Shown here: one piece after another, positions 4,975-26,000 of the stretch
Layout: each line of letters opens with the position of its first letter
Position numbering within the stretch: position 1 is the first letter of the stretch
Notes under the pieces: generated by a model
The model's input: only the letters and a program-made list of their open reading frames with translations
The model's database searches: none
What the model was told of the DNA's origin: nothing
Assembly (NCBI RefSeq): GCF_006345805.1
Contig: NC_043001.1
Location: 39,556,001-39,620,000 of the forward strand
Direction of reading: 5' to 3'
DNA: 64,000 bases
Source of the DNA: Octopus sinensis
Taxonomy: Eukaryota
Program-made: the position numbers and the translations under genes

Positions 4975-5016
4975 CATCAGGTTTCCTTGAAACACTGACA
5001 AAAACATCATCCATGT
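4975..5016 (-). CDS. Tail exon X5 (42 nt; DMDDVFVSVSRKPD, Tyr to Phe)
   Basis: gtcttaaag|ACATGG...CCTGATG|gttagg; weaker donor. Confidence 0.55.
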
Positions 5017-8000
5017 CTTTAAGACATTAATGCAAGAATTTAAAACATGGCTATAAATTACATTTATATCATGTTAGTATTGTTGTTATATTGCCATAAT
5101 AAACAATAATGAGATAGACTCAAACACACTCACACACACATATATGTATGTAGAAATATGTTAACAGACTAAAAGAGAATATACATTTCATGATTGTTGG
5201 TTTTTCTTTAAGATCATTTTGAAGATCATACTATATACTAACAATATTGATAATACTTTCCTGAGTGTTTCATGCATAAATATCTAGGTTCACTATCTTC
5301 AGCTTTAAAAATGAAATAAAAATGGGCATCTTTATTTTTTGGAGATAATGTTTTAAATATATTGATATTGCACAGAAAGTAATAAGTCAACACCAGGACT
5401 AATCTTATATACTTTCTTAAGCTTAGTACTTTATCTATGAGTCTCTCACCTCAATAGGTTTTGATCTCAGAATGTACTGACACTAATTTTTATTCCATCA
5501 ATGTTTAGTACAGTATTATACTCATACCATCACTTCAATATTTAAACTGATAATTAAAAATGATGATGTAGCCACTCACAAATACATTTATAGAAATTAG
5601 ATTCTTTCTAAGGCTTCTGTCTTGCTAGAGTAATCCACAAGCAGGAGTAACTTTGGATACTCAACACACTCACACACACATGTATGCATGTAGAAATATG
5701 TTAAAAGACTAAATGAGAATATACATTTCATGATTGTTGGTTTTTCTTTAAGATCATTTTAAAGATCATGCTATGTACTAACAATATTGATTGTACTTAC
5801 CTGGGTGTTTCATAGGTAAATATTTGGGCTCATTATCTTCAGCATCTTGCTCTCTCTCAGCTTTAAAAGTGAAATAAAAGTGGGCATTTTTATTGTTTGG
5901 GGAGATAGTTCTTAAATATATTGATATTGCACAGAAAATAGAAAGTCAACTTCAGGACTTACTTTATATACAGCAGATTGGTCTGTTTCTTGGTATCCTT
6001 CTGGCCTCCAGCCTAAAGTCACTAATGACTAGCCTATGCTGGGGGGCACATTCTTCATCTGGGAGGATCTTTGTATTTAAGAGCAGCCCTGTGTCCTGCT
6101 GTCTGATGAGAATGAAATCAAGCTGGCTAACAGAATCCCCTGATTGATAGGTTATAAGGTGGCTGTCTGGCTTCCTGAAGTTAGTGTTGCAGATTAAAAG
6201 GTTACATGCATCACAGAACTCCAGTAGCCTGGTTCCCTCATCGTTTCGGGTGCCAATACCATGGCCACCATGTACCCCAGTGAAGATACCAGATTCCCAC
6301 CCAACATACCCATTAAGGTCTCCAACCACAAAGATGCGGTCGTTGCTACTCCTCTTTGAGGTAGCCTGTAGAAGGGTATCATAAAAGTGGTCCTTCTGAT
6401 CATTTGCTAGCCCCACACGTGGGGCAGAGATAATTGTAGCTGTGCTGTTCTGCAGGACTAGCCTGAGCTTAAGCACTCTATCACACACCCTAGCAACCTC
6501 TATGACCTTATCCACCCATTTCTCTGTGTGGATTATGCCTACACCCCCTACACCATCCATGTTACCTTGCCAGAAAACTTTATACCTATGTGCCTTGCCT
6601 GTGAGGACCCTAGCTGAAGCTTCACTCCATCTTACATCTTGTATGCAGCATACATCAACCTTTCAAGCATCTCTACAATCTCGCTAGACCTCCCTTTCAG
6701 TGTGCCAACATTGACAGTGCCAACTCTGAAAACTGGGAAGCGAATGTGTAGAAAGTATTGGGTAGGAGGGATGTTATTCAGCACCTGAAAAGAAGTGGGT
6801 TCTTGTGGTGTTTGTTTCTTAAGCATGCTTCATCTGTTCTCTCTTCTGACCTGACAACATTCAAGCATTCAGGTATGTTAAGATTGTGGCCCCTACTGGA
6901 GGTAAGAGCTGGGGTTAGCAGCATAGTAAGAATAAGCATTATGGTCATCGAATGATGTAGATTCAAGCAGTGTAGCAAAAATATGGATATTCCAATGTTA
7001 GGTTAGGAGGGAGTCAGCTGAAACTGGTTGCGTTTGTCTTATATACTGCATTATTAAAGGTAAGGACCAATAAAAGGGTAAAATATCAAAACTGAGTAGG
7101 AATGTTTACCAGAGGTTGCTGGTACATGTTATGAAATTTTGCCGTTCTCAATGCTTTTCAGGTGTATATTTGTCATAAGATATCCACTTCTGAAACACAT
7201 TGTTCTGGGATCAGTCTCACAGCATGTGTATGCTACAATGAGCATGGGGCGACGAAAGCTGTGTGAGTGTATTTGGTAGATGGAAAATGAGAAAAGAACC
7301 CCAGCATGGCCACAGCCATAGGGCTAAAACATGTAAAAGAAACATATATATATGTATATATACATATATATATATATATATGTTTCTTTTAAACATATAT
7401 ATATGTATATATACATATACATATATATATGTTTCTTTTACATGTTTTAGCCCTATGGCTGTGGCCATGCTGGGGTTCTTTTCTCATTTTCCATCTACCA
7501 AATACACTCACACAGCTTTCGTCGCCCCATGCTCATTGTAGGATACACATGCTGTGAGACTGATCCCAGAACAATGTGTTTCAGAAGTGGATATCTTATG
7601 ATAAATATACACCTGAAAAGCATTGAGAATGGCAAAATTTCATAACATGGTTTTGTCTCTAATTAATATTATATAATATTTTACTATAAAATTGGATTCA
7701 ATCCTAAATCTGATTTTTCCCTGTAAATTTGAATTTATTCCCTAATATTTATTATTATTATTATATATATATATATATATATATATATATATATATATAT
7801 ATATATATATAATCTTTTACTTGTTTCAGTCATTTGACTGCGGCCATGCTGGAGCACCGCCTTTAGTCGAGCAAATCGACCCCGGGACTTATTCTTTGTA
7901 AGCCCAGTACTTATTCTATCGGTCTCTTTTGCCGAACCACTAAGTGACGGTTGTCAAGCAATGCTAGGGGGACAAACACAGACACACAAACACACACATA

Positions 8001-23000: not shown

Positions 23001-26000
23001 ACTTGACAATGGGTATTGGTTTGTTTACAGGAAGAGAACTTAGCAGCCTGACATAAGAAACCAATACTTAAATATAAAATATAATATGTGATTTTTTTAT
23101 GGATTGCTTATGTACTTACCATCAGGTTTCCTTAAAACATTGACATAAATATCATCTGTGTCTGTAAGAAATTAATACGAGAATTTAAATCATGGCTATA
23201 AATTACATTTATATCATGTTAGTATTGTTGTGATATTGCCAAAATAAACACTAATGCGATAGACTCAAACACACTCACACACACATATGCATGTAGAAAT
23301 ATGTTAACAGACTAAATGAGAATATACATTCCATGATTGTTGGTTTTTCTTTAAGATCATTTTAAAAATCATGCTATGTACTAACAATATTGATTGTACT
23401 TACCTGGGTGTTTCACAGATAAATATCTGGGCTCACTATCTTCAGCATCTTGTTCTCTCTCAGCTTTAAAAATGAAATAAAAGTGGGCATCTTTATTGTT
23501 TGGGGAGATGGTTCTTAAATATATTGATATTGCACAGAAAGTAACAAGTCAACTCCGGTACTTACTTTATATGTTTTTTAAGCCTAGTACTTTATATATC
23601 AGCATCTTTTATTGAATTGCTCCACTATGAGTATGTAAACACACCAACACCTGTTGTCAAGCAGTGATGAGGTGAAAAACACACACACACACACAAACAC
23701 ACATACACATAGATGCACACACAATGGGTTTCTTTTAGTTTGCATCTTACACATCCACTTACAAGGCTTTGGTCAGCCTGAGACTACAGTAGAAGAATCT
23801 TGCCCAAGGTGCCATGCAGTTGTAGGGAAGCAAGCTTCTTACCATACAGCCATGCCACACTTATGAGTAGAATTTTAACATATCCAAAGTTATATTTTTG
23901 CACATGCATACACATGTTATTAAACTGTATATTTTACACAAAGAATCTGCTAAAACTTTTGCTAATTTCCCCAGGACTGATTCCAGCAACAGGACTCGAA
24001 AATGAATCTAAAACAAAGAAGTATTAACACTAATGGTTCTGACTGAACTTAAAATAAAATAAAAGGATGAACTTGTGCATTAAAGAGTGTAATTTTAGTA
24101 AAATATTGTTTATATGCTTACTTAGAACATTAACATAAGCATCATCCATGTCTTTAAGAAAAGAAAATAATGAATATGATACATGGCTATAAATGATATT
24201 TACAATATATTGGGCTGTGCTGAGACTACCTGAACACACATGATAGACTCAAGCACACACACACACACACATGCGCACACATGCACACACACACAAGCAC
24301 ACACACATGCACACACATATATATTCATATCTATATAAACACATATCAGGCACCAGTTTTAATTTCTGATTCTCAGATAAGAAAAGTTCTTATTCTCTAA
24401 TGAGAAATTTCAATGTACAAGATATTTATTGCCTAATCAATATTATAATAGTTCTACTTGTCATTGCATTACTTAGCCCATTGGTAATGCTCTCATGTGA
24501 TTAGAGAAAAAGAAGGAGAAAAAAAGAGGGAGAAAGAAAAAGGGGGTGGAGAGAGAAGCATCCATGTTATGAGGTAGAGGGAATGTAATTGTAATGTTTT
24601 CACATGATTTGTTGAAGCAAAAGAGAAGAGAAAGAAAAAGGAGAGAGAAAAAGAGGATAAGGCACAGAGTGAGACAGGAAGAGGGAAAAGAAAAAGAAGG
24701 AGAGAGAAGCGTCCATGACATGTGATAGGGAGATCGTAATATATATTATGTGGTTAAAATTTAGTTGAAGCTAGAGGAGGAGAGTTAAAATTATAATTTT
24801 AGTAGAGAGGTAATGTTCGAATATGGAGGTTAAAGAAAGGCAGTGGGGGGGGGGGTAGAGGAGTGAGAGAGAGAGAGAGAGGAGATGACAGTGGTGGTGG
24901 TGACTGGATAGTAAAAAGGGTATTTTTTTAAAGATTGAACCAAATTTTTATATTACCTGTCACTTAACGCATGCACGTAAGTGCAATTCAGTGAAATATT
25001 AACGCTTATTTACATGGCAGACATATGCAATTTTACTAAAGACTGTATCTTAGGTACAAGATATTTTTCTTGTTTGTTTACGGGGAAAATGGAAAAATAA
25101 GAGTGAATATTTATTTTAGGAGTGCTGTGTATTAAGTCTATAAAATTGTGCATCAAGTGTATAAACTGTATATATAGTGCATTAAGTAATCATTGTATTC
25201 CAATTTCTTTCATTTTTCAATGAATTTTAGGATGTGTGACTATCTTTCCATACAGACATAACACAGGTTATGCTTTCAGGTTTTTTGGATAAAGTTTCCA
25301 GAAATAACCCAATAGGGTTACTATCAATTTTGTGAAATATTCACAGGTCCCATTAATATTACTGAAACTGAATTACCCAAATCATGTCATGTTTCACCAT
25401 TTTTCCCATTTTGAATTCTTCTCAAATGACAAATTACTAATAAATTCTATTAAAACTATTTTCAACACCATCAATGTTAACAATCAACTGACTAATCAAT
25501 GTGCAAATTTATATCAGGAGAGAGTTATGTACTGGTGGATAATGGCACACTTGGAATTACTGATCCTTAAAAGTTAGAGGGACACAAGTGCTACAATGGA
25601 AAGCTATTAGATATGAAGATTCCATGAGAATGAGAGTCTTTTCAGTATCGACCCAATGAAAGGACCAGTTGTTCTAGTGAACAGATGTCTTGGGTAAATC
25701 AATTAAGGTTACGAAGGTAGGGAAAGCTTTCATAACCTTAACTACGTGTAAATGTGTGTGTGTGTGTGTGTGTGTATACACACATGAACATACACAAATA
25801 TATACATATATAAACACATACAGACACACATACACACACATTCCATTGTTCACTTGCATTTATTTCCCCATGATAGCATGTGTTACATGAATATGTATTT
25901 GAAGCATGGATTAGCAGCCAGATAACCAGATGTTGTTAACCAGGTTGTATGACACTTGTGTTCGAACTGCAATGCTGCATGGAGATGAGACATAGGTAAA

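Follow-up and report, generated by a model that had tools for sequence, protein, structure and literature searches.

The closest described counterparts of the locus treated here are vertebrate signalling chains with repeated tyrosine motifs in their cytoplasmic tails. [quoted passage not shown] The classical ITAM is D/E/NxxYxxL/I-x6-9-YxxL/I (PMC4536121; 10.1101/2022.03.04.482883), and the available excerpt of PMC4428620 describes ITAM multiplicity as amplifying TCR signals. The array described here occupies positions 4975-24151 of a 64,000-nt stretch of the Octopus sinensis genome (hereafter the window; NCBI RefSeq assembly GCF_006345805.1, contig NC_043001.1, positions 39,556,001 to 39,620,000 of the forward strand). 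The middle portion of the LOC115212116 cytoplasmic tail is encoded here; LOC115212116 is an uncharacterised multi-Ig type I membrane protein. Each unit of the array contains a 60-nt exon (Y) and a 42-nt exon (X). On the basis of sequence comparisons, a tail for SH2 docking, built from amplified Y/X cassettes, is the favoured explanation overall and a probable one.

As in TCR zeta (CD247) and Xenopus FcR gamma, tail valency has been raised in the octopus by duplication of small exons encoding a bipartite motif with two tyrosines. The systems share no sequence homology. The octopus motifs have Met or Val at position +3, not Leu or Ile, and the exon boundary lies after the first module, not within it. 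They are carried by the ligand-binding immunoglobulin superfamily (IgSF) chain itself, with an uncharged transmembrane (TM) segment, and the copies are far more numerous (five cassettes in the window, about 27 tail exons). Multi-substrate docking sites are known from Met (Y1349VHV...Y1356VNV), Gab1 (YVPM three times), IRS-1, and CD28 (YMNM). DAP10 carries the docking motif YINM (PMC4536121). Like these proteins, the octopus tail clusters acidic-flanked YxxM and YVNV motifs in a disordered region, with predicted recruitment of p85 and Grb2. The former have few, fixed motifs in ordinary exons, whereas each octopus motif has its own small exon and the pair amplifies in tandem.

In PECAM-1, FCRL, and CEACAM1, tail tyrosine motifs are spread over several short exons, which can be alternatively spliced to alter signalling. 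The octopus tail motifs are likewise split over small exons, whereas the exons of PECAM-1, FCRL, and CEACAM1 did not arise by recent tandem duplication of a single cassette and encode ITAMs or the corresponding inhibition (ITIM) or switch (ITSM) motifs. The micro-exon genes of Schistosoma encode secreted proteins without tyrosine signalling motifs. There, as in the octopus, arrays of very short frame-symmetric exons permit gain, loss, and skipping in frame; the octopus exons, in contrast, encode a receptor tail with tyrosine motifs. Polymorphic IgSF proteins with canonical ITAM, ITIM, or hemITAM (hemi-ITAM) tails are described in the available excerpts on Botryllus FcoR (PMC11507803) and Hydractinia Alr (10.1101/2022.03.04.482883). 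Judged from those excerpts, they share with the octopus locus the lineage-restricted, clustered, and fast-evolving IgSF genes and the tyrosine-motif tails varied by exon usage or alternative splicing. A tail made from a tandemly amplified two-exon cassette is not reported in the same excerpts, and the proteins have no sequence relationship to the octopus ones.

All array, Ig, TM, and juxtamembrane (J) exons are on the minus strand, and coordinates are window positions. The array is a dispersed-tandem repeat, bounded by the start of X0 at 24151 and the end of X5 at 4975. Its five units (U1-U5) of about 2 kb are spaced, start to start, by 1628-2103 nt, or by about 3.8-6.3 kb where transposable elements (TEs) or other sequences have been inserted. 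The consensus is xEREQDxEDSEPRYLPMKHP for the Y exon and DxxDVYVSV/YVNVxRKPD for the X exon, and within a cassette the two are separated by an intron of about 220-240 nt. The Y exons, each 60 nt long, are Y1 (23404-23463, TEREQDAEDSEPRYLSVKHP), Y2 (19651-19710, GEREQDSEDSEPRYLPMKHP), Y3 (13585-13644, also GEREQDSEDSEPRYLPMKHP), Y4 (11543-11602, AEREQDAEDSEPRYLPMKHP), and Y5 (5801-5860, AEREQDAEDNEPKYLPMKHP). The X exons, each 42 nt long, are X1 (23120-23161, DTDDIYVNVLRKPD), X2 (19369-19410, DMNDVYVSVSRKPD), X3 (13303-13344, also DMNDVYVSVSRKPD), X4 (11257-11298, DVDDVYVSVSRKPD), and X5 (4975-5016, DMDDVFVSVSRKPD). Upstream of them, X0 (24122-24151) encodes (N/D)MDDAYVNVL and is just 30 nt long because of an in-frame 12-nt deletion. 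All Y and X exons, X0 included, are in phase 1-1 with an AG acceptor. The donors are GTAAGT, except for X4 (GTAAAT), X5 (GTTAGG), and X0 (GTAAGC). This shared phase means that the reading frame survives the gain, loss, or skipping of Y and X copies. Under common definitions of microexons (51 nt or less), the X exons (42 nt), X0 (30 nt), and the J exons described below (19, 17, 42, and 42 nt) are microexons, while the Y exon is a short exon and not strictly a microexon.

Over X0 and Y1-X5, the tail contains four YLPM, one YLSV, two YVNV, and three YVSV motifs. The motif of X5 is FVSV, in which Phe replaces Tyr. The array also contains decayed copies. Y' (12536-12595) is a Y-type copy with an open frame (DVKEQHAEGSKHEYVYIKEL) and an AG acceptor, and its donor is GG. 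Y5' (5261-5302, AEDSEPRYLCMKHS) has an 18-nt in-frame deletion and the donor GA. A further decayed fragment of the array is at about 10902-10968. The original cassette partner of X5 is Y5', and the intact Y5 derives from a Y-only partial duplication 540 nt upstream.

RefSeq already lists this sequence, as an uncharacterised protein, and the exon chain is part of that model. XP_036359227.1, named "uncharacterized protein LOC115212116 [Octopus sinensis]" and 1220 aa long, was retrieved by an exhaustive search that started from a tail-only relative. The spliced chain Ig-a, Ig-b, Ig-c, TM, J1-J4, Y1-X1...Y5-X5 is 515 aa long and is identical to residues 494-1007 of this protein but for two residues, both at the start of Y3; the Y1-X5 part corresponds to residues 837-1007. 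At the start of Y3 (13640-13644), the window encodes Gly-Glu (GTGAG...) and XP_036359227.1 has Ala-Met, which requires three nucleotide differences, and the other 512 residues match. The mismatch could come from another haplotype or another assembly version, or units U2 and U3, which are nearly identical, could have undergone conversion.

In RefSeq, the order is TM-J1-J2-J3-J4-Y1, and X0 is skipped, as are Y' and Y5'. X0 is in frame between J4 and Y1 with good splice sites and is absent from XP_036359227.1; judged from these sites, it may be an optional cassette exon. After X5, the model continues outside the window with 13 more X- or Y-type units and the three-residue end DYQ. The whole RefSeq tail thus has 423 aa with 29 Tyr, 10 YxxM, and 9 YxN, encoded by about 27 tiny exons, nearly all of them frame-symmetric. 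X5 was considered as the terminal exon, as its mutated donor creates an in-frame TAG; this was ruled out, because RefSeq splices X5 onward. No counterparts of a paralog's unique C-terminal exons were found in the window, nor a nearby poly(A) signal, the closest AATAAA being 1.5 kb off. The C-termini of four family members from three Octopus species (P0008, P0010, P0014, and P0015) share the conserved stop ...[G/S](D)YQ, which suggests that the family tails have a common terminal exon with a C-terminal Tyr.

The initial annotation of this stretch, made from the sequence alone, had described a 1.6-2.1 kb repeat with a 60-nt and a 42-nt exon in each copy. The pair is present in the units at the coordinates given above, and the spacing exceeds that range just where TEs are inserted. 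Its motif tally was exact, and its exon order Y1-X1...Y5-X5 is that of the RefSeq chain. On two points it differs from the RefSeq model. It had placed X0 in the tail directly after the TM exon, where RefSeq joins TM to Y1 via J1-J4 and omits X0, and it had ended the tail at X5, where 13 units and the three-residue end follow beyond the window.

Upstream of the array, the window contains three Ig-like exons. Ig-a (61242-61490; 249 nt, phase 1-1, AG/GTATGT) shows weak Pfam I-set/ig matches and equals residues ~494-576 of XP_036359227.1. Ig-b (58912-59166; 255 nt, phase 1-1, AG/GTAAGT) is identical to the RefSeq protein and by itself matches Pfam Ig_3 with E=7.8e-6 and 26.7 bits, under the 30-bit cut-off. 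Ig-c (56407-56715; 309 nt, phase 1-1, 100% RefSeq match) scores 29.8 bits against I-set, over the cut-off of 23.7 bits. When the full protein is scored, Ig_3 reaches 54.9 bits, I-set 40.7 bits, and C2-set_2 21.9 bits, each over its cut-off, so the extracellular Ig fold expected of an IgSF type I receptor is present. The N-terminus of the protein is MEFKLLYWKHFLTVQCLCVCLQ, and the 5' end of the gene is outside the window. The TM exon (52692-52793, EITEVTLGTIIGCFVGIVLLITLVLLIYNSHKIR, phase 1-1, 100% RefSeq match) contains, by inspection, one hydrophobic stretch (LGTIIGCFVGIVLLITLVLLIY) without a charged residue, followed by the basic NSHKIR, with the tail on the C-terminal side. Given a TM segment that has no charged residue and is followed by HKIR, signalling probably runs through the receptor's own tail.

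Four J exons separate the TM exon from the array. J1 (47657-47675; 19 nt, (A)VKCKK, phase 1 to 2) and J2 (42470-42486; 17 nt, DISSAK, phase 2 to 1) both have AG/GTAAGT splice sites, and J1 is in XP_036359227.1. Together they encode the juxtamembrane sequence AVKCKKDISSAK, counterparts of which (GVKRNKETSSAK and similar) recur in paralogs. J3 (33969-34010; 42 nt, GVVDYYETIPDKRY) and J4 (28156-28197; 42 nt, NAVSADATNLSKLK) are phase 1-1. J4 is a degenerate X-type exon without Tyr, and its counterpart in O. bimaculoides retains the Tyr (NVERAYGISSKPS). J3 carries a third type of tyrosine motif near the membrane, D/N-Y-[AE]-T-I-[PS]-D, which is YETI here and YATI in paralogs; in the paralog P0014, this motif is duplicated several times.

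Judged from the gene models, the array exons are very probably present in mRNA. J1 and J2 are frame-asymmetric and 5 kb apart, and the frame is restored only by the pair. Ab initio prediction would probably not yield such a pair, and therefore the model was probably built on transcript alignments. The order of J-type and then Y/X exons recurs in independent paralog models of O. sinensis, O. vulgaris, and O. bimaculoides, and the O. vulgaris annotation drew on Iso-Seq, RNA-seq, and protein alignments (PMC10700109). At the locus LOC115212119 (L001), each 20-aa and each 14-aa protein unit has its own exon.

Some features of these models speak against splicing of the array as annotated. The support consists of automated gene models. 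The model of LOC115212116 is about 780 kb long, with LOC115212119 nested within it; given such a span in a cluster of tandem paralogs, its 5' Ig part or distal tail may be chimeric. P0008, the RefSeq model of LOC115212247 (locus L002 of O. sinensis, with the O. vulgaris ortholog L003), uses non-AG acceptors, and therefore these annotations are not uniformly reliable. At about 12170 and 21714 of L002, the Y exons of the second and third cassettes (c2 and c3) have a TG acceptor, not AG, yet P0008 takes them in, through two different acceptors that lie 3 nt from each other. In O. vulgaris, the matching c2 exon is left out of the model for the orthologous locus.

It could be supposed that the exons are prediction artefacts or relics; the array would then not be expressed in the modelled form, and the RefSeq protein would have been chained together computationally from paralogous repeats. 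The 780-kb model and the non-AG acceptors of the sister model would fit this. Querying with the 181-aa conceptual tail gave no protein matches, which would also fit but is uninformative, because the same tool missed the window's own RefSeq protein from an Ig/TM query. Three annotation efforts in three species yielded the same exon types, however, the asymmetric pair of 19 and 17 nt is unlikely from ab initio prediction, and frame and Tyr are conserved across diverged cassettes. An artefact is thus very improbable indeed.

The similarity between units spans 1-2 kb in unit alignments, which favours recent duplication. The window cassettes are 83-98% identical to one another and 63-70% identical to cassettes at other loci. 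In a neighbour-joining (NJ) tree, the window cassettes form one clade, c2 and c3 of L002/L003 another, and the three identical Y exons of L001 a third. The distal RefSeq tail beyond the window contains an additional duplicated Y-X-X block. The tandem amplification proposed in the initial annotation is therefore real and recent, as these identities, alignments, and tree indicate. Based on the same comparisons, either the cassettes would have been amplified independently at each locus or their copies would evolve in concert. Probably, a unit of about 2 kb carrying the Y-intron-X cassette was duplicated in tandem five times by unequal recombination, and retroelements were inserted between the units afterwards.

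Among 1.84 billion representative sequences, the tail matched 11 proteins, 9 of them from Octopus; the two others, one fungal and one metagenomic, have the appearance of unrelated repeats. A profile search with a 68-aa two-unit segment returned two short tail-only models and nothing else. At this sensitivity, the tail module appears confined to Octopus. L001 was at first sight an ortholog from another species, being colinear with 72-90% identity. This was ruled out, because it is a same-species paralog of LOC115212116 nested in the range of that gene. An O. vulgaris protein annotated as "adhesion G-protein coupled receptor G6-like" (P0012, CAJ1099246.1) has a J/Y/X tyrosine tail in its C-terminal ~200 aa. 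Either neighbouring genes were fused in the annotation, or the tail cassette was shuffled onto another receptor class. A Pfam match to "MHB haemophore" in P0010 (33 bits, residues 918-946, in the Y3/X3/Y4 region) was rejected as an artefact of summed repeats, since no single stretch passes.

Selection on the exons was considered at two scales. Among the window copies, Y exons differ pairwise by 5.7%, against 11.8% in the upstream and 2.8% in the downstream flank, and X exons differ by 11.9%, against 9.8% upstream. The changes in the window Y exons are six nonsynonymous and one synonymous, and the intron distances between copies are 0.05-0.10. The window copies are simply young. The initial annotation had stated that the exons are kept while their surroundings decay. 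This is true at the scale of whole units, but not beside the exons (Y 5.7% against 2.8% downstream, X 11.9% against 9.8%), and the comparison of exon with intron divergence went against it for the window units, in which exon substitutions are as many as those of the flanks.

The comparison between loci, which is the one with statistical power, included 11 complete cassettes from four loci (the window, one cassette from L001, and three each from L002 and L003), aligned as Y exon, intron, and X exon with flanks. Identity is 70.6% in the Y exon, 71.4% in the Y-X intron, 69.3% in the X exon, 59.9% in the upstream flank, and 63.7% in the downstream flank. The gap fraction is 0 in both exons and 0.136, 0.109, and 0.128 in the intron, upstream flank, and downstream flank, respectively. 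Of 31 distinct indel events, none falls in the 102 exon columns, against an expectation of 5.8 (P=0.0017). All 11 cassettes are open with both tyrosines in spite of about 30% divergence, and for a neutrally evolving copy the chance of staying so at the observed distance is just 6% per lineage. The test of indels and tyrosines carries some ascertainment bias, as decayed copies exist at each locus. The Tyr codon of the X exon shows a synonymous change between TAT and TAC among cassettes. In these alignments, selection on the exons appears as the absence of indels and the retention of Tyr, not as a lower substitution rate. The pattern fits a disordered tail with short linear motifs, where constraint acts on frame, length, splice sites, and a few residues and the rest drifts.

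The same data contain points that weaken the interpretation as a selected docking tail. The array holds decayed copies (Y', Y5', and the fragment near 10.9 kb), and the window exons are no more conserved than the adjoining intron. Between loci, the ratio of nonsynonymous to synonymous substitution rates (dN/dS) is 0.5-1.4 and the pooled pN/pS is 0.85, so that most residues are near neutral, and the exon dN of about 0.33 is roughly the intron distance. The amplification could then be largely neutral: unequal crossing-over within a repeat-rich intron would multiply frame-symmetric exons, which the disordered tail tolerates, many copies would be skipped or idle, few tyrosines would matter, and copy number would have no signalling meaning. 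A dN/dS near 1 with exon divergence roughly equal to intron divergence, the decayed copies, the loss of Tyr in X5, the change from Asn to Ser in amplified X copies, and the skipping of X0 by RefSeq all agree with this. So do the O. vulgaris model P0007, which takes one Y and one X from three cassettes, and the comparable amplifications at several loci, as mutational bias predicts. On the other hand, the exons of 11 of 11 cassettes at about 30% divergence are free of indels and have both tyrosines, and the RefSeq model takes in all ten exons Y1-X5. A largely neutral amplification is rather unlikely on this evidence.

The docking tail is suggested by the motifs themselves. The conceptual tail of 181 aa is acidic (net charge -26) and proline-rich. 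Each cassette has two tyrosines after acidic residues, in Y[LV]x[MLV] (mostly YxxM) and in Y[VA][NS][VI]. Across the family, the motif of the Y exon is Y[LV]x[M/L] (YLPM, YVCM, YLEM, YLEL), and that of the X exon is Y[VAI]N[VIA] (YVNV, YANI, YDNL, YVNA), with YxN as the consensus. The YxxM pattern is present as four YLPM in the window, ten times in the full tail, and as YVCM and YLEM in paralogs. Phosphorylated YxxM binds the SH2 domains of class IA PI3K p85, and phosphorylated YxN binds the SH2 domain of Grb2; pYVNV is the Shc Tyr317 site.

In the window, YVN is seen only in X0, which RefSeq does not use, and in X1, while X2-X4 have YVS; the full tail has nine YxN. The window motif YVSV results from a change of Asn to Ser, by which the Grb2-defining Asn is lost. 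Of the docking motifs named in the initial annotation, both YxxM and YxN are thus the family-wide consensus, but its Grb2 assignment is weaker for the amplified window X copies. Against a docking function are these YVSV copies together with X5, which has no Tyr, and the fact that all these motifs also match YxxΦ endocytic signals.

Another possibility is that the cassette, whose X exons read [DE]DxYVxV, is an ITAM- or hemITAM-like module (YxxM-x8-YxxV) recruiting a tandem-SH2 kinase of the Syk/Shark type, with the tail as a string of activation motifs like TCR zeta. The x8 spacing from Tyr to Tyr is fixed in every cassette at every locus without an indel. A relaxed ITAM-like pattern occurs four times in the window tail, and YxxM-x8-Yx[NS] occurs seven times in the full tail; one paralog has YLEL-x8-YVNA, the first half of which is canonical. 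The X motif VDDVYVSV resembles EDDVYAIL of Botryllus FcoR, termed a canonical hemITAM in the available excerpt of PMC11507803. However, in a regex scan the strict ITAM (Yxx[LI]x6-9Yxx[LI]) matched neither the window tail nor the full RefSeq tail nor any of four paralog tails, and no strict hemITAM was found in the family members examined. The +3 residues are M and V/A, and fixed exon lengths alone account for the fixed spacing. The exon boundary follows YLPMKHP, three residues past the first tyrosine module, whereas the boundary of the classical ITAM splits the module (PMC4536121). Because there is no canonical motif and the boundary does not split the first module, the cassette is not an ITAM, and an ITAM-like function is improbable. 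ITIM ([SIVL]xYxx[IVL]) and ITSM (TxYxx[VI]) patterns had no match in the conceptual tail (X0, Y1-X5), and the loose ITIM pattern had three matches somewhere in the full 423-aa RefSeq tail.

The match to YxxΦ gives a different reading, in which the motifs are mainly unphosphorylated sorting signals for AP-2 mu2, so that receptor and ligand would be quickly endocytosed or sent to lysosomes, as happens with scavenger or phagocytic receptors. YLPM, YLSV, YVNV, and YVSV all match with Φ as M or V, and motifs such as YVKM of CTLA-4 serve AP-2 binding and SH2 binding alike. Yet the context is strongly acidic, and the Met at +3 in the Y exon and the Asn at +2 in the X exon are conserved family-wide. 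These features are typical of kinase and SH2 recognition and are not needed by YxxΦ. A mainly sorting function is quite improbable, and sorting and SH2 readings are not mutually exclusive.

In the proposed SH2-docking mechanism, receptor engagement would lead to phosphorylation of the tail tyrosines and recruitment of SH2-domain proteins. YxxM would recruit a PI3K regulatory subunit, and YxN, the putative ancestral X motif, would recruit an adaptor of the Grb2/Drk type, with the disordered tail serving as a multivalent docking platform. The motif sequences make it reasonably likely that the tyrosines are phospho-dependent SH2 docking sites. The naming of p85 and Grb2 as the specific partners is tentative. 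That signalling output would scale with cassette number, as the initial annotation supposed, is doubtful.

Other repeats lie in and around the array. Between U2 and U3, a reverse-transcriptase (RT) fragment of a retroelement is present at 15018-15890 on the minus strand (Pfam RVT_1 E=3.3e-17, over the cut-off). U5 is split by a TE-rich insertion at 5967-10443. This insertion contains a weak endonuclease-RT-like open reading frame (ORF) at 5967-6662, under the Pfam cut-off, an ORF like that of long interspersed nuclear elements at 8563-9498, and a 61-nt tandem repeat at 9548-10155 with a 122-nt higher order and about 10 copies. The 61-nt repeat is probably part of a retroelement tail. Its relatives are seen at 22580-22691 and 27778-27921 in the window and at 29274-29552 of L001. 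Two simple repeats were also found. One is a (TAC)n/(GTA)n microsatellite of 67 copies at 60993-61194, which begins about 50 nt downstream of the Ig-a donor, and the other is (ATT)66 at 42978-43175.

Literature searches by topic and by locus name found no publication describing this tail architecture or naming these loci. Multi-tyrosine docking tails and the gain of motifs by exon duplication are already known, and the unusual features of this case are its scale and regularity. The locus is set apart by the type of motif, by one small frame-symmetric exon per Tyr, by the recent and repeated amplification of the cassette, and by its scale. The amplification is apparently independent in several paralogs and has led to about 27 exons and 29 Tyr in a receptor family seen in Octopus only. 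It offers a clean example of a disordered region growing by unequal recombination of frame-symmetric microexons, with selection on the frame and a few residues rather than on the bulk of the sequence.

To our knowledge, receptor-proximal tyrosine signalling in cephalopods is essentially uncharacterised, and this family would provide an entry point to it. If the tyrosines are used, the family would be a natural system in which docking valency differs from paralog to paralog, and perhaps also among isoforms and individuals. A further proposal from the sequence comparisons, unlikely as it stands, is that cassette number is a fast-evolving and selected gain control in Octopus-specific IgSF receptors of an immune or recognition type. 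The paralogs would expand or contract their tails independently, and alternative splicing of the frame-symmetric exons would tune the number of PI3K/Grb2-type sites on display. If this were true, it would be a lineage-specific, convergent counterpart of the ITAM multiplicity of vertebrate antigen receptors.

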